A stretch of 63,126 bases of DNA, the filler included, from Ministeria vibrans ATCC 50519 (Eukaryota > Protista > Filasterea): assembly GCA_943704425.1 (NCBI GenBank). It is 10 parts of 10 records of this genome, joined end to end, with 100 filler letters (N's around TTAATTAATTAA, not from the genome) between each part and the next. Parts side by side here need not be neighbours in the genome. Positions count along the whole stretch, not along the records: positions 27,099 to 34,992 come from CALSCP010000857.1; 9 more parts are not named here. One strand, 5' to 3'. A model generated the notes under the pieces. That model was not told the DNA's origin. It was given only the letters and a program-made list of their open reading frames with translations, and searched no databases. Positions 27,099 through 34,992 of this stretch are shown piece after piece. The position numbers were made by a program, and so were the translations under genes. The stretch's first letter is position 1. Each line of letters starts with the position of its first letter.

Positions 27099-27207
27099 AC
27101 CAGCTTGATCTGCACATACTGAATACCAAAGGTTGCGGGACGCTGGAGCGACGTGGCGCCGCCCGTGCCGTAAATCGAGTTGCTAATCTCAAACTTGACG
27201 CGGCACT
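27099..27207 (+). repeat. 109-bp exact terminal direct repeat of the contig (second copy 34884-34992)
   Basis: accagcttgatctgcacatac...aaacttgacgcggcact is present at both contig ends. Confidence 0.97.
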
Positions 27208-29256
27208 GACCCTGGCCGTTGGTCGAGTGGCATGCGGCACGCGTGAGCGAGCCGTCCGTGTCCGATTCGGTCATATCGATCCAAGCGTCGGTGACACCCT
27301 CGCGCACGAGAACCTGCATGCCAACGCCCTGGGCACTGAGATCGTCCACGGAGTAGTGGTCAAAGTCGATGACAATGGTGAGCACCTGGAAGACACCACC
27401 AAGATCGAAGTGGAGCGAGCGCGACTGGGGTGCGTTGGGCGCATCACTGCATGCCACGTTACCGTTGGTGGTGCAGCGAGTGCCTGCCCAGTAGCTGGGA
27501 AGCGCGGCAGTGTTTGAGATAGCGATGGACTTGGCGCCAGCATTGCTATCGGTGCTCTTAGCGGATGTAAGGAAGTAGGTGGCGATGTTGGTGCCCATGG
27601 CCCAGTTGGTGGCTGAAGCGCTGCTAGCCACAAAGCTCATCACGTCCGTGGCGGTGGCGAGGAGGTACCCGTTGGCGGCACGGTTGAAAAGGAACACGTT
27701 TGTGGCGCTCGCAAAGGCAGCACTTTCGGCCGGGCCTGTGGTCGCCTCGAGGTCCCACCAAAAGGTAGGGTCGTTGACGAACCAATCGTCGGAGTTGCCA
27801 ACCACAATGGCGTTGGCGGGCTTTGACGCATCGTAAGCGATAGTCTCGTTGGCGTTGTTGTGGAGCGTGCAAAAGTCCTGTGTGCCGAGGTCGGCGAGGC
27901 TATCGGCCGCCTGGAAGGCACCCGGCTCAAAGGTCTGCTCGACGCCAAAATTGAAGAAGCCAGTGCCGAAGGAAAGACCCGTGTAGATGCCGGCGTCGCC
28001 ACCGACGTTGATCAAGTTCCACACCTCGCTGTTCGGCACGTACTCGCCGGTGTTCAGGTCGATGATGGCGAAGAGGATGGTGAAAAAATTCTCGCCGTCC
28101 TGCGCGTCGTTTGAGACGGTTCCGAGTTGGAAGCGGACATCACGGGTGGGGAGCGCAGGGCGCAGCGTGTTCATGGTGATGTTCTCGATTTGCTCGTTGA
28201 GGGCTACCGCCAGTGGCGACGTGGTAGGGCGGTTGGTGAAGACGAGGCGGACCCACTGGCACACGTCGGCGATGTACGAGTTGACGGTGACGGTGGACTC
28301 GAGGCCGTGAAGTTCGGCCGAGTTGAGGCTCGCCTCCTGGAAGCGGTACAGGTTGAGGTAGCTGCTGGCACCGGAAACCTTGAAGGCCCGGTTGCGGAAG
28401 ACGGGACGCTCGTTGTCGTATTCGTCAATCCAAAACTCGGTTGTGGCGCGCGCGCGAAGCGGGATCGGCGTACCAATGGCGAACTTGTTGGGGAGTGCGG
28501 CAGGCTTGAAGTAGTCGAGCGAGAGAACGTCCCATTCAACATCAGACACAAACATGTGACCATCGGGGAGCGTGTAGGTGGCACGGAACTCGTAGTTGGT
28601 GTGCGACGTAAAAAGACGCGCCAGCTTGAAGCTGATGATCGAGGCACTCTGTTGGGCGGTCGTGAGTGTTTCAATGAGCGAAGCGGCCATGCTGGAGACG
28701 GGTGTCCAAGTGTTAGGCACATGGGTGGCCTGCTCCTGGACGGGGTTGCGGCGGAACTGAAAGTCGAAGACACCAGTGGAGGGGACCGAGCTAGACTTGA
28801 CGACGGTGACGGTGTACTCCGAGTTCTGGTGAGCCTCGCGACGCTTTTGCACGTCACTACCGCTGGTAGGCACGGCGGGCTTTTGAGCGAAGAGAGCCTT
28901 GTTGCAGGTGAGCTCGGAGGCCGGTGGGCACACCGCCTGCGAACAGTAACACTGGTTTCCGTCGAAACAGAGAGTGGTGGAGCAGTCGACAACCTGATCA
29001 ATGTGGAACTCAAAGGCCGCGTCTGTGGCAGCCACCTCAAAGTTGAAGATGGTGTCGACGGTGACAAGAATGGTCATCTGGATTTCGGTGGTCATTCCGG
29101 TGCACATGGCGTGCCTGTCAGAGAAAATATACAACGATCGTATCAATTTGTAATTCATTCTTCATTTCTCACTTACGTGGGCGCACCCTGGACGGTGTAA
29201 ATGAGGTCCTTGTCCACTTGCATGCGAAGGTCTGCCGCGTTGGAGCAGGCAGTCAC
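27099..29256 (-). CDS. Laminin-like protein, 5' part (unknown N-terminal region + first part of LN domain); continues at 34883 through the contig's terminal overlap
   Basis: Exon 29256-29177, then an exon from 29114. LN-like SYWAG...SLHFDLGGVFQVLTIVIDF; ends YVQIKL, identical to the start of the 34900 ORF. Confidence 0.85.
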
Positions 29257-29458
29257 CTAGCCATAAGTACAGGATAAAAGCGAGAAAAAGTTATAAGAAT
29301 GATGATAATGAACAAGCTGTCTCTCGGATAATATCCATCCCCTTTACAAAACAAGGACCGTGCGGAGACAAAAATACAGAACCCCATAATTATGAATTAT
29401 GGTGTTGTTGTACACGACGGGCGGGCTGAACAATCAGCAATAGGCCTGCTCTGTGCCC

Positions 29459-29491
<33 letters not shown>

Positions 29492-30067
29492 GTTATCAAA
29501 TGTGCCGATTATTGGTCGGACTGTCGCTCTTCTCGCACTCTGAGGAAAGAAACCAGTGCCCAAGTCGACTGGAGTTGTCGAGCGAGGTGAAAGAGAGACA
29601 CAGCAAGAAGTTACAAAAAAAAAGTAGGAATTTTTTTTGGCGCTGATTGAAAGACAAACTATTGATTATTAATTGCACATTATTTGTTACAATATCGCAA
29701 GCGCCAAGCGGACGCGACTTACGTCTACACTCTACAGACTTGAGACTACATACGACAGACGAGCACCGCGCCGCTCGCCCGTCCGTGCGCATAATACGTA
29801 CTCCTTTTACTTTCAATAAGACCAATCAATGTCCAATAGTAAATTTGATAATAATAAATATAATAATAATTATTATATTTCGTCGTTTCCCTGACTCGAT
29901 TAAATCACTCGAAGTTCTTGAATCTTGAACTGAGTCCACGAGATAACCTCAATTGATTGACAATGAAGTGCTTTTCAGTATAAAAGTGTGTGAAATAAAG
30001 TAGACTTTTTTTATAACTCTCCTCGCACACACTCTCCTCTCTCTCTCTTCTCTCACGTAAAAATAAC

Positions 30068-33000
30068 TTAGTTGGTGATGACGACGTTGAACTTGTTGGT
30101 CACAAGCGACATGTTGAGCACCTGCTGAACGGCGGCACCGCCAGCGTCGCTTCCGGGCAGGGTGACGAGCTGCAGGGCGCCCTTGAAACCGTCAAAGGCC
30201 GGGTCGCTGTTGATGTTGACGGCGGAACCGACCAGAGTGGGCACGGTACCAAGGTCAATGGTGGTGAACGAGCCGCTTACCGACGCCGAGCTGGAGATGA
30301 TGAGCGTCGTACGGTCGGCGTTGTACACGTTGATGGTACCCACCAATGAAGGACTGCTCGTCCACGAGATCTCCACCACATACCAGATGTTCGCGAGGAG
30401 ACCCGTCGTGGGCACCGAGGCGACACCAGTGCCGGAGCCGGCGTCGAACGAGAAGGCGAGCGAACTGCCACCCGAGGTGAAGCTCAGCTTGATGAAGTCG
30501 TTGATGCGGCGCGCGCTAAAGATAGTGCCGCTGACAAACGAGGTGACCTTGAAGCGGGCGCTGTAGGTCGAGCCTGCACTGGCGGTGGTAGCACGCGTGA
30601 TCAGCGTGTTCTCCACACGGAGACGTCCGGTGCCCGAGAACGTGCCGGTCTGCACCAACGTGCTCGAGGTACAGGTGGCGCCGGCCCAGCCCGAGGCGCA
30701 CGCACAAGTAAAGCCGACCGAGGTCTGGGTGCAGGTGCCACCGTTCTTGCAAGGAACACCAGCGCACGCGCCAATCACCAGAATTTCGAGCGCCAGAAGA
30801 CGCGCCGAGAGCGAATCCGTCTCAGTCTTGGTGCTGTACGTCGCAGCGGCGTCCACCTGACTGAGGAAGGTCGATGTGATCGCGGTCGACGTCATGTAGT
30901 TGGTCGACAGGTCCGTGTTGGTGTTGTCCACGCGTGTGTTCACGCTGGCCAGGTCGCTGGTGAGCGACGCCACATTGTTGGTGTTCGAGGTCACCTGGGT
31001 TTGCACAGTGCCCACCGTGGTGGTGAGGGCGGCAAGATCGCTGGTGAGCGACGCGACAGAGTTGGTGTTGCTCGTGACGCTTGTCTGGAGGGCTGTGATG
31101 GACGCCTCGTTTGCGGTAAGACGCAGGGCACCGGCACTCACAGCCATTGAGTTGGCGACCACGCGGTTGTCGAGAGACGACACGGTAACCATGGTGGCGT
31201 AGGTGGCGGCCACGCTCGAAGAGAGTGCGCTGATCTCGTTAGTGCGAAGAACGCTTTCTTGGGTGATTGCAGCGGTGTTGGAAGTTCCCACGCTAGCCGC
31301 CAACAGAATGGCCGCAGCGTTATCCGCAATCAAAACGGTGTTCGCGTCCACGTCAGTGCGCAGATTGGCAGCAAAAATGGTCGTGTCGCTGTTGAATGTC
31401 GTCTGTGTCGTCCACAATGCCATGTTTGAAGCCTCGTTGTCAGTGATAGTCTGCTGCAACTGCAGCACCGTGGCCTCGAGCAGATCGGCCTCGTTCGTGA
31501 GAATCACGATGTCGTCTTGCACTGCTGAAATCGACGCGTCTTGGACACCCTGGGCCGTCTGAATGCTGTCAATGTCCGCGCTGTTCTGCATGACTGTCGA
31601 CTCCTGGGCGGCAACCTTGGCCTCGGCGGCCACAATGCGAGCGTCAAAGGTGTCCACCTTGACTGACAAAGCATCAACCTCGGCCGTGAGAGCAATGTTG
31701 CTCGCCTCAATCGCATCGATGGTCGAGTTGATCTGAATGACGGTTTCCTCAAGAGGCTCCACCACGGCGTACACGTCAAGAACACATTGAGGGCAAGGCT
31801 CACACTCGACGTAGCGAGCATCGTTGGTCAAGCCCAAGGGCGAGTATGAGCCCGCAACGGCCTTGTAGCCACGAGAGCAAGTGCGGCAGGTGCGTCCCTC
31901 GTAGCCAGTTTGGCACGAGCAGGTGTAGTCACCCTCAAGACCGGCGCCCGTCGTGGCGCAGGTATCGTCAACAATGCCAGTACCGGCGTTACCAACGGAG
32001 CGCCCGTTGCAGTCACAGTCGAAGCACTTGAGCGACTTGCCGCCCGCACCGAGAACGAAGCCGTCCTCGACGACGGTGCCGAGATCCAGAGTCACGCCGG
32101 TGTCGCGGCGCACGGCGCTGCCGTAGGTGCCGCTGGCGCACAGCTGACATTTGTCACCCTCGGTGTTTCCAAGGCAGTTGTCGCAAATCTCCATGCCAGA
32201 GCTGTGCTGGCAGTTGAGCGTGGCAATGGTAAAGTTAACGTTGACGTTGCAGTCGCACGGGATGCATTCGCTGAATGAGTTGCACTCGCCGAGGGCGCTG
32301 CCACCGGCACCGGGCATCTCGCACACGGTGGGCGTGCCAAAGTACACCTGGTTGTTGCACGAGTTGCACGACGCACCCAAGTACGTCTTGAGACCGTCCG
32401 CGGGACGCTCGTCGGGGCAGTTACACACACGCTCGCCGGCAACATGATCGTAAAAGCACGAGCGGTCGGGGGCACCGGGCTGTTGTTGTTCGCAGAAGAG
32501 AGGGCCGCCAAGGCGCGTCTCGGTGACGGTAATGTCGACGCCGAGGTTGAGGTCACCAGTGAGCAGGTTAGCGCCAGTGTGGTGGTAGCAGTTGCCCTTG
32601 CAAGGCTCGCACGAGATGGAGGCGGACGGGTCGCCAGAGTAGGCGGGAGCGCATGTCTGGCAACGGAAGCCCGACTCGTTGTTGTTGCAGGTACACTCAC
32701 CGGTAGTCTCGGCACACTGAGAGTTTCCGCCAAAGCACCAGCCAGCGCAAGGCGAGCAGTCGTCAGCGAGCGTCTGCGACGCGCATCCGGATGGATTGGG
32801 CGAGAGGGCGCACGACGAGCACACGTCCAAGCTGACGGTAGGGTCGACCATAAGGTGACGGAAGTAGTTCGCCTGGCACTGTTCGCAGTTGAAGCCGGTG
32901 GTAAAGCCACCGCAGCTCTTGCACTCGCCAGTCCATTGGTCACAAATACCCTCGCCCGTGGCGGGATCTTCCTGCGAGTGGCCATTGCAGTTGCACGCAG

Positions 33001-34992
33001 TGCACGAAAGCTCGCGAGCGGGGTCGGTGTCGGCGATGGCAGCGGCCGCCACAATGTTGGCCAACGTGGCGGGGGTACGGGCGAAGCTCGGGAGACACAC
33101 GTCGCAGCGACCCAGATCGCCGTTAGTGGTACTGTCCTGGCAGGTAGACGCGTCGCACCATCCGGTGGCGTTGCACGTCGACGAGTGAGTGAAGCAGCGG
33201 AGCGAGCAGGGTGTGCACTGCTGTCCGTTCAGGCCGTTGCCGGGTGTCGACCAGTAGTTGGTCATGCATGACTCGCAGTTCTCGCCCTCGACACCATGTG
33301 CCGCGAGACAGAGTGGGGTGCAGTCGCCGCCGACGGGGTTGCACACCTCGAGGCCGTTGGTCAGGGTAATGTGACCGTTGCAGTTGCATGGCTGGCAGTC
33401 GTCGGTGAGATCGACGGCACAGTCACCGCCGGCGATGGAGCCGCTGACGCACGGACGGAAGAATCCCGCATCGCACGTCTCGCAGTTGGGACCGTTGGTG
33501 TTGCCCTGGCAGTTAAGCGAGCCCACCGACGGGTAGTCGTCGCAGTGGCCGCCGGTCTGGTGGCAGACGGTAGCATGACCGTTGCAAGCGCAAGCAAGGC
33601 ACTCGCGCTTGACACCACCGGCGCTCTCCTCGGCCGTTCCCTCGGCGTTCCAGTAGCCGAGCTCACACGACTCGCAGTTGTCACCAGTGGTGTGCTCATT
33701 TGCATCGCAAGTGCAGACACCCGTGGTCGGCGAACAAACAGAGTCCTGGTTACACGAGATGGTGCCGGCGACGGCCGTGTCAAAGTACGAGGCGTAGGTC
33801 GTGAGCTCGCCGTGCTGGTTGCAGGCACAGGCACTGCAGGCGTTGGCGAGCGGTGCCGAAGAAAGACGCCAGAAGTTAGGCTGGCAAATGGCGCACGAAG
33901 AGCCCTGAGTGTTGTCCTGGCACACATCCTCGGCGTTGGTGCCGTCGAACATGCAGTCGCCGCCCACTGGTGAGCATGTTGCCGAGTGGCTGTTGCAAGC
34001 ACACTCGCTACACACGAGGCCGTTCAGCGCGTTGCCGGTGCTGCTCCAGTAGCCGACCTCGCAGTCCTGGCAGTGGGTGCCGGTGGCATGGTGAGCGGGG
34101 TTGCAGAAGCAACCGCAACCATCCTGGTTGCACACTCCGTTGTTCTGGGCGGGGTCGTCGTGGCCGTTGCACGAGCACGCCTCGCACGTCTCGGCGAGAC
34201 AGCTCGGGTTGAGGATGGGGTTGCAAAGGTTGCGGCAAAAGCCAGCAACACAGTTCTCACAGTTATCACCCATGGTGTTGGTGCTGGCAGCGCACACGCA
34301 CACACCGGTGGACACATCGCAACCACGCGTGGTGTCGGCAGGGGTAAGCGAGCCCTGGATGGACCACGTATCGTGTCCGTGGCACTCGCACGCAAGGCAC
34401 GGGCCTCCGTTCGGGAAGAAGACTTTGAAAATCTCGGTCCAGTCACCGTTGGGGTCGATGAAGGCGCCGTTGATGCCGTCGTACAGGTAGAAGTTGTTAC
34501 CGATCGAGTCGGTCGTGGCCTCAGGCAGCAGAGGACCGTCGCACATGAAGCGAGCGGTGCTCAGGAACATGCCGGTCGTTGGGTTGCTGAAGGGCTTGTT
34601 GCACGTGGTGGTGGGATTGGTATCGCCCGTGGAGGGGCGGGGCACGTCATTCCAGGGGTTCTCCCAGTAGTTTCCCTTGCACTCACCGCAGTGGTCACCG
34701 GCGGTGAAATGCTGGCAGGTCTCGATGCGCGAGGGAATGTTGGTGCCAGACTCGTTCAGGATGCACACACCTGTCTCGGCATCGCAAGACTCAGACTGGC
34801 CGTTGCAGATGCAGTAGGCATTGACAAACATATCGGAGATGCCGAAGTACTGAAGGTCGGGTGAGAGGGTCACCTCAAACTGCACCAGCTTGATCTGCAC
34901 ATACTGAATACCAAAGGTTGCGGGACGCTGGAGCGACGTGGCGCCGCCCGTGCCGTAAATCGAGTTGCTAATCTCAAACTTGACGCGGCACT
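30068..34992 (-). CDS. Laminin-like protein, 3' part: end of LN, ~13 laminin-EGF repeats, ~335-aa coiled coil, EGF, laminin-G
   Basis: YFGISDMFVNAYCICNGQ (LN/LE junction), repeated CxCNGH...C...T.G..C..C..G[FY], CEPCPQC preceding heptads, CAGVPCKNGGTC EGF, LamG motifs WYVVEI...TLVGS...GFKGAL. Confidence 0.9.

Follow-up and report, generated by a model that had tools for sequence, protein, structure and literature searches.

Does an apparently non-animal organism encode a laminin chain, or a protein that has come to look like one? The question is raised by a gene in a window of 63,126 nucleotides (nt), the whole stretch of DNA that was analysed, which joins 10 parts of the assembly GCA_943704425.1, filed under Ministeria vibrans ATCC 50519. 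We examined the piece at 27099–34992 (CALSCP010000857.1), which carries the gene on its minus strand; all positions refer to the whole window, all features named below lie on the minus strand unless stated otherwise, and residue numbers are those of the full-length protein P0003 (2,391 aa). Our reading, which we hold with a probability of about 0.6, is that the gene encodes a 2,391-aa secreted glycoprotein of a marine eukaryote that has the layout of a laminin chain and forms a parallel, in-register oligomer with a cysteine clasp. It is a laminin-like, probably homo-oligomeric surface or matrix protein. The likeness to laminin is one of design; membership of the laminin family is not established.

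A protein with the domain order of a laminin chain

The gene is represented by two transcript-derived proteins, namely P0001 (2,363 aa, source contig L001), found by a word-indexed protein search with 100% identity over the query region, and P0003 (source contig L010), found by cluster look-up in a metatranscriptome of the Joint Genome Institute (JGI). The translation of the window differs from P0003 by 4 substitutions, and P0001 additionally lacks 28 residues. The full protein of 2,363 or 2,391 aa was recovered from spliced and polyadenylated transcripts of three RNA data sets that are independent of one another (L001 from SRR6471170, L010 from JGI 3300040761, and X12). Hence, the gene is real, expressed, spliced and polyadenylated. 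All searches were performed with exon pieces or with these transcript-derived proteins, and the joined translation of the window was used only for coordinate mapping and for counting differences.

The order of head, LE array, cysteine clasp, coiled coil, EGF and LamG is real and collinear with that of a laminin chain. A sequence-only reading of this DNA had listed an LN-type end motif (YFGISDMFVNAYCICNG), about 13 LE repeats, the motif CEPCPQC, 335 aa of heptads, one EGF and one LamG domain, all of which we found on the minus strand, and the pattern goes far beyond what chance would produce. The architecture which it called complete lacks its beginning, as exon 1, encoding 88 aa including the signal peptide, is missing from the piece.

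The 13 LE repeats (residues 811–1820; 31784–34813) were recognised by Pfam, by their cysteine pattern and by BLASTP similarity to a genuine laminin β (E = 3e-25), and they form the tandem eight-cysteine array expected of a laminin chain. According to the cysteine pattern, the units start at residues 811, 952, 1023, 1081, 1139, 1218, 1286, 1346, 1417, 1499, 1548, 1663 and 1743. Pfam covered the array in 11 stretches (EGF_laminin, PF00053, E = 1.7e-35; EGF_LMN_ATRN, PF24973, 2e-29). Two unrelated inserts interrupt the rod at residues 881–949 and 1552–1660. A laminin IV (L4/LF) domain was not found, as neither PF00052 nor PF21199 matched, with a value of 1.5e-33 for the control laminin β.

The array is closed by CEPCPQC (residues 1814–1820; 31784–31804). 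The pattern C-x-P-C-x-x-C occurs exactly once in P0003 (at 1814), once in its relative P0002 described below (CKPCPSC at 1544) and once in the genuine laminin β (CEPCHPC at 1179), and always at the border between the last LE repeat and the coiled coil. An hhalign comparison over this junction aligned a preceding LE half only and not the clasp itself. The coincidence of CEPCPQC and CEPCHPC at the same border, together with the collinear order of a domain in the position of LN, LE1, LE array, clasp, coiled coil and LG, argues for a true member of the laminin family, whether inherited or transferred from an animal or holozoan, and carrying a diverged, self-associating LN head, thus a homotrimeric 'proto-laminin'. 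We consider such an origin doubtful; beyond the evidence on the head presented below, the missing laminin IV domain and the C-terminal end of the protein count against it.

This end consists of one Notch-type EGF repeat (residues 2160–2191; 30671–30766) and one LamG (LNS) domain (residues ~2195–2391; 30071–30661), which is followed directly by the stop codon at 30068–30070. The EGF repeat was identified by a phmmer search of PDB sequences, in which Notch1 EGF gave 1.8e-5 for the best single repeat and 4.9e-19 for the whole protein, and weakly by Pfam hEGF. In the window copy, LamG scored 23.4 bits with Laminin_G_2 at a cut-off of 22.9. Compared with PDB sequences, the C-terminal 239 aa matched neurexin-1α (7e-12), pikachurin (5e-7) and agrin (3e-6) over the EGF and LNS pair, and the LamG part alone matched laminin α2 LG (2e-3). 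The domain is thereby placed in the LamG/LNS superfamily by a profile as well as by solved domains. On sequence criteria, we regard the LE, EGF and LamG assignments as secure. The five tandem LG domains of laminin α chains were not found in the protein, which has one LamG after one EGF.

That this pair is nearest to neurexin, pikachurin and agrin rather than to laminin LG is expected if the protein arose by convergent domain shuffling in a protist, from a discoidin- or CBM-type (carbohydrate-binding module) jelly-roll head, common LE and EGF repeats, a generic coil and a LamG domain, and serves as a surface adhesin or cell-covering protein. We regard this origin as possible, though short of an even chance. 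It has to account for an LN-type last strand, an LE1-type tail and a C.PC..C clasp that coincide in position with those of laminin, three independent coincidences which are hard to obtain by shuffling alone.

The coiled coil and its predicted self-association

Between clasp and EGF lies a coiled coil of 335 aa (residues 1821–2155; 30779–31783), assigned by heptad statistics and by a three-copy model. The power at period 3.5 was 2.3 as compared to 0.21 ± 0.21 in shuffled sequences, none of 5,000 of which matched it. Seventeen heptads follow one another without a break, V/I occupying position a and L/I position d, and stutters interrupt the later segments; residues 1821–2128 of P0001, 308 in total, contain 1 proline and 3 glycines. 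Judged by the heptads, the C.PC..C motif and the three-copy model, a long heptad coil with a cysteine-clamped start follows directly on the LE rod, as in laminin. Pfam Laminin_I and Laminin_II did not match the coiled coil, a further point against a true laminin.

Three copies of residues 1812–2135 were folded together along with three controls. The interface score ipSAE reached 0.68, 0.68 and 0.69, with 0.00 for the best control, at a predicted local distance difference test (pLDDT) of 78–86, and at least 82% of the contacts were common to the runs. The mark for ipSAE had been calibrated on two copies of microbial proteins, where it is reached by 21 of 30 homomers and by 0 of 23 monomers of solved structure, and holds only roughly here. 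Contacts followed a 3–4 spacing over residues 1820–2132 and paired the same residue between chains (e.g. 1972 with 1972), so that the modelled coil is parallel and in register. The model thus supports self-association of the heptad region as a parallel, in-register coiled coil; three copies were modelled, and the number of strands is not fixed by this result. The coiled coil postulated by the sequence-only reading was borne out by both checks, and its homotrimer is in agreement with the three-copy model, the laminin membership attached to it not being established.

The composition of the coil, with 3% lysine plus arginine (K+R) and 38% S/T/N/Q, differs from that of the laminin β coil with 17% K+R, and it lacks therefore the charge pattern needed by a chain-selective heterotrimer. 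The uncharged coil fits a homo-oligomer better than such a heterotrimer, and one chain type only was detected in this organism. The same composition, unlike that of laminin, is also expected from convergence. A possible lead is offered by RIVAAE at 1869, its R falling on position g, and RLLALE at 2148, both of which fit R-h-x-x-h-E, a putative trimerisation motif.

Inside the coiled coil, a direct repeat of 84 nt (28 aa) is found at 30925–31069. The 84-nt stretch at 30954–31037 is skipped in a contig of X13 and missing from P0001, a length polymorphism of strain or allele. As the difference amounts to exactly four heptads, the heptad register is kept.

The head domain and its relationship to LN

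In front of the LE rod lies a β-rich domain of ~170–240 aa, the end of which (residues 752–810; 34814–34992) includes the last strand YFGISDMFVNAY and was identified by phmmer against the PDB and by hhalign. The end motif YFGISDMFVNAYCICNG corresponds to residues 799–815 (34799–34849) and consists of this last strand and CICNG. A phmmer search of residues 601–1014 against the PDB gave netrin-4 (4wnx) as the best match (2e-7), followed by netrin-1, laminin α5, netrin-G1 and laminin β1 LN-LE; the matches to the junction in netrin-4, netrin-1, laminin α5 and laminin β1 span E = 2e-7 to 2e-2. The alignment starts at LQYFGISDMFVNAYCICNG as compared to FMHYAVYDFIVKGSCFCNGHADQC of netrin-4, i.e. at the last LN strand. 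A profile of P0003 and P0002 aligned by hhalign with the genuine laminin β (L006) and a laminin γ-like fragment (L003) gave a probability of 96.4% (E = 1.2e-9, 63 columns), again over the last LN strand and LE1, including ...NYWENPWN as compared to ...GYNDLPWR. LE1 accordingly ends in the Y-x-x-x-P-W tail of laminins and netrins, which is specific for LE1, and the complete signature of an LN-LE1 junction (Y-Y-x-φ-x-D-φ-x-V-x-G-x-C-x-C-x-G-H plus the P-W tail) is present. This junction argues for a true member of the laminin family.

The body of the domain points the other way. Pfam Laminin_N (PF00055) matched neither P0001, P0003 nor P0002, at E ≤ 1 for the whole proteins and at E ≤ 10 for the domain alone, and detected the control laminin β with 4e-75. 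A profile of the domain body found no PDB sequence at E ≤ 10. Smith-Waterman z-scores with true LN domains ranged from -0.6 to 1.2 as compared to 18.8 for a true LN pair and 10.7 for P0003 with P0002, and the β-rich core comprises ~170 aa as compared to ~235–250 aa in LN. Of the domain profiles, EGF_laminin and Laminin_G_2 thus matched as the sequence-only reading had anticipated, and Laminin_N did not; its LN domain stands for the last strand and LE1 and not for the ~170–240-aa body, which matches no LN model.

Structure prediction yielded weak hints in both directions. AlphaFold2 models built from two-sequence alignments (residues 560–1010, pLDDT 30.8; residues 640–885, pLDDT 40.1, predicted TM-score 0.44) were too poor for fold assignment. 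In a Foldseek search with the poor model of pLDDT 40.1, laminin β1 LN-LE1-4 (4aqs) came first (E = 1.8e-3, template modelling score 0.34), a match that favours a true laminin, but is weak in view of pLDDT values of 31 and 40, and partly driven by LE1. Further down, the same search listed netrins, but also CBMs, neuropilin b1 and the ligand-binding domain of EphA4, as one would expect from a convergent jelly roll. Similarly, the neighbours of the head in a language-model protein atlas were F5/8-type-C plus LE proteins (0.85) as much as netrin-G (0.84), with all values below 0.9 for both head regions. A body motif W...φxφDLGGxFxφ resembles the core of LN and discoidin domains and counts in favour of a true laminin. 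A word-indexed search with residues 640–1140 of P0001 at E ≤ 10 returned P0001 itself only, a weak blank because the known relative P0002 was missed as well, and the same type of search with an alignment returned nothing. In our reading, the head is a galactose-binding-type jelly roll in the position of LN and joined to LE1 as LN is. The odds that it is a diverged LN rather than another member of that fold class are about even.

Upstream of the head, the protein begins with a large orphan region. Residues 21–560 (27542–29256 plus exon 1) had no match in Pfam, the PDB or a protein library, and they could not even be aligned to P0002, whose alignment begins at residue 568. Pfam gave no match for the first ~790 residues. 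The N-terminal 790 aa found no relatives among 1.84 billion representative proteins, a result which is easier to reconcile with convergence than with descent from laminin; the query was the least conserved part, and its own cluster was missed too.

A membrane-anchored relative and environmental laminins

The relative P0002 (2,302 aa, source contig L002) was found with 35% identity in the word-indexed search and belongs to another organism, with 42% GC at third codon positions (GC3) as compared to 77%. Over the LN-like domain and the LE rod, up to the coiled coil, it shares 32% identity with our protein and has the same inserts and clasp (L002/L011; P0002, P0004–P0006). P0002 continues with ~700 aa of coiled coil and a spacer rich in Asn, and it ends in a transmembrane helix in place of EGF-LamG. 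Because LamG is exchanged for a membrane anchor, the comparison suggests that the C-terminus is the cell-proximal end.

Genuine laminins were also obtained from environmental data. L006:481-5853 (JGI Ga0187748_1055425), which served as the positive control, is a complete intron-less coding sequence of an animal laminin β (1,790 aa) from a JGI metatranscriptome, with Laminin_N (4e-75), LAMININ_IV_B and 13 LE repeats; L008 is a fragment of L006. L003 is a laminin γ-like fragment of environmental origin. A metagenome contig, L009 (JAAUYM010071383.1), carries an intron-bearing, GC-rich animal LN plus LE gene; it was found in one local tblastn search, set aside and not used.

Gene structure and completion of the reading frame

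The C-terminal part of the protein is encoded by a single open frame of 1,640 aa, which runs from 34990 to the stop at 30068–30070. Beyond the stop on the same strand follow an AT-rich stretch, an 81-nt exon, a 62-nt intron and a second frame, open between 29113 and the edge of the piece at 27099. The 81-nt exon is exon 2 (residues 89–115; 29176–29256), which has an AG acceptor just upstream and was located by tblastn of P0001 and blastn of L001 and L010. Intron 2 (29114–29175, GTAAGT...AG) is AT-rich and appears as a 62-nt skip in the RNA assemblies X13, X6 and X12. The first part of exon 3 (residues 116–786; 27099–29113), supported by its translation, a 100% tblastn match to P0001 and the overlap of the ends, encodes the ~540-aa orphan N-terminal region together with the greater part of the LN-like β-rich domain (27101–27541).

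The two ends of the piece, 27099–27207 and 34884–34992, are identical over 109 nt (100%). The frame ending at 27099 therefore runs straight into the 1,640-aa frame, with exon 3 resuming at 34885 owing to the duplicated ends, and the piece is thus circularly permuted, its period being 7,785 nt. The 2,303-aa protein of the sequence-only reading is this joined frame, i.e. residues 89–2391. Exon 1, comprising the 5' untranslated region and residues 1–88, is found nowhere in the piece, and the signal peptide MKSVMLAFTAALLVGSAQA is known from transcripts only: contigs of X13, X6 and X12 stop matching at 29257 and continue with letters encoding ...LRSNVEKIVT, the end of exon 1. A spliced leader was not seen at the transcript 5' ends.

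Downstream of the stop, the 3' untranslated region of ~80 nt (29988–30067) leads to a poly(A) site near 29987, as transcript contigs end at 29988–29995 and X6 has a non-templated T-run at 29987. An AT-rich spacer (29258–29987) with 39% GC joins this 3' end to exon 2 within the piece. It is untranscribed or intronic, judged by its composition, its tandem repeats and the absence of any RNA contig over it. Rfam and tandem-repeat scans of the spacer gave nothing besides a 29-nt A-run (29463–29491) and an AT-rich microsatellite. The latter (29835–29877, ATAATAATAAAT units) matches short stretches in several other contigs of the source run, and local depth rises there to 685 as compared to 57.

The contigs of four runs were compared with the piece. 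The Logan contig of the probable source run (7,801 nt) ends inside the 29-nt A-run from both sides, and the link that closes the circle therefore lacks independent confirmation. Its k-mer depth is 57 as compared to 27–44 in neighbouring contigs, by which the copy number is not settled. Closure across the A-run may reflect a tandem array, a real circle or a false join, i.e. an assembly artefact. A viral or plasmid origin of the 'circle' was rejected since the gene is spliced and polyadenylated. On the plus strand of 30068–34992, many long antisense open reading frames (≤ 292 aa) lie wholly inside the GC-rich coding region; they lack support and are most likely by-products of composition.

The host organism

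A single exon accounts for at least 6.9 kb of the coding sequence, and of only two known introns one measures 62 nt. The coding parts contain ~61% GC as compared to 39% in the spacer, and the gene has a GC3 of 77% with strong codon bias. The stretch is present in runs filed under five organism labels (2011–2025) with 0.95–1.00 of the sampled words; the share is 0.96 in one marine poly(A) metatranscriptome and small in five more. Gene structure and composition make it very likely that the host is not an animal, and we lean towards a host outside Holozoa as well. Intron poverty also weighs, more weakly, against choanoflagellates, given the intron density of that group. The genome had been called apparently non-animal by the sequence-only reading; this is likely for the reasons given, but unproven.

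An animal, as host or contaminant, whose gene would be a diverged relative of laminin or netrin, is in our opinion a very improbable source. The domains are typical of animals, the piece carries no marker gene, and genuine animal laminin transcripts such as L006 and L003 do occur in environmental data. Against this stand the long coding exon and the short intron, the combination of 77% GC3 with a 39% GC spacer, unexpected in marine animals, and the occurrence of the same sequence in runs of five organism labels as well as in poly(A) metatranscriptomes of marine origin. In addition, residues 752–1251 found no animal protein at E ≤ 1e-3 among 5.8 billion clusters, and the protein has neither Laminin_N nor laminin IV, both of which animal laminins have kept.

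Proposed assembly and its significance

According to our preferred reading, a secreted, laminin-like homo-oligomer, identical chains would zip together in parallel and in register via the uncharged coiled coil, most likely as three chains and possibly as two, and disulfides at the clasp would lock them. The stalk would measure ~50 nm, and LE arms of ~35 nm would splay from it, each carrying a large globular head. The EGF-LamG end might bind a glycan or receptor at the cell surface, and the heads could face outwards and bind other molecules or one another. The sequence-only reading had likewise suggested polymerisation via LN and receptor binding via LG, both of which are conjectural.

Several observations weigh against this reading. 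The Laminin_G_2 (PF02210) score is close to its threshold, with 22.7 bits for P0001 and the above-mentioned value for the window copy on either side of the cut-off. Three was the only copy number modelled, and long amphipathic helices are easily placed side by side in predictions. P0002 as assembled has no signal peptide and L002 contains an in-frame stop upstream of the ATG, which makes the topology uncertain. The head has no recognisable relatives, and its role is a guess.

Nevertheless, the complete layout of a laminin chain recurs in an abundantly transcribed protein of an apparently non-animal organism. The LN-LE1 junction and the clasp motif are common to this protein and laminin, and the protein seems to self-assemble. 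Should the head turn out to have the LN fold, laminin would have arisen earlier than assumed, and its origin could be tested in a unicellular organism amenable to culture. Otherwise, the protein would be a clean example of a cross-shaped matrix design reached by convergence. In both cases, it represents a new protein family, characterised by its large orphan head. The most far-reaching version, a true laminin homologue in a marine protist outside animals and possibly outside Holozoa, with diverged LN head, LE rod, clasp, coil and LG-type end assembled as a homotrimer, we judge unlikely. In that case, either the ancestor of the α/β/γ heterotrimer would have a living model in this homotrimer of a single chain, or an animal matrix gene would have been transferred to a protist.

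Comparison with known systems

In the literature, laminin counts as an innovation of animals and as fundamental to basement membranes and epithelia (PMC4582122, PMC3308698), and from unicellular relatives only laminin-related genes have been reported so far, not the full arrangement. Adams and Brancaccio, who found secreted laminin neither in choanoflagellates nor in Capsaspora, regard laminin as a metazoan innovation (PMC4582122). According to Hynes, choanoflagellates have LamNT and LamG domains, which are not arranged as in animals (PMC3308698). Leclère and Rentzsch restricted LamininNT to animals and choanoflagellates (PMC3516229), and López-Escardó et al. placed the gain of Laminin_N at Choanozoa (PMC6792448). 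Laminin-like genes in choanoflagellates are ascribed to Fahey and Degnan 2012, as cited in PMC5395295 and PMC3516229; with reference to that study, Fidler et al. describe laminin architecture as present in choanoflagellates (PMC5395295). The statement of the sequence-only reading that the combination of laminin domains is an animal innovation needs this qualifier. We found no relevant report of laminin domains in phytoplankton in the literature. As the protein described here is unrecognisable as LN by the method of these surveys, they would have missed it. The choanoflagellate laminin-like genes resemble it as non-animal genes with laminin domains; their LN is seen by Pfam, whereas our protein has the laminin arrangement without a recognisable LN.

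Netrins (netrin-4, 4wnx; netrin-1) are the best matches among solved structures (2e-7), over the last LN strand and LE1-LE2. In contrast to the protein described here, they end after three LE repeats and add NTR, and the body of our head does not align with theirs. Neurexin-1α, pikachurin and agrin, to which the C-terminal 239 aa are most similar (7e-12 to 3e-6) over both EGF and LNS/LG, have several EGF-LamG modules and neither LE rod nor coiled coil.

In layout, the protein resembles the laminin chains themselves. Laminin β/γ chains (e.g. L006:481-5853) are likewise secreted and have an N-terminal globular domain joined directly to LE1 with its Y-x-x-x-P-W tail, 13 LE repeats and a single C-x-P-C-x-x-C before a long heptad coil. 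They differ in a head that Laminin_N detects (4e-75 in the control), in a laminin IV/LF domain in the rod and a β-knob, both absent here, and in a charged coil (17% as compared to 3% K+R) twice as long as ours. Our protein in turn has the C-terminal EGF-LamG and an extra orphan region of ~540 aa in front, and it is predicted to form a homo-oligomer instead of an α/β/γ heterotrimer. Laminin α chains have five tandem LG domains where we find one LamG after an EGF, and L4 and Laminin_I/II have no counterpart here, but these chains share with our protein a coiled coil followed by a laminin-G type domain as the presumed cell-binding end.

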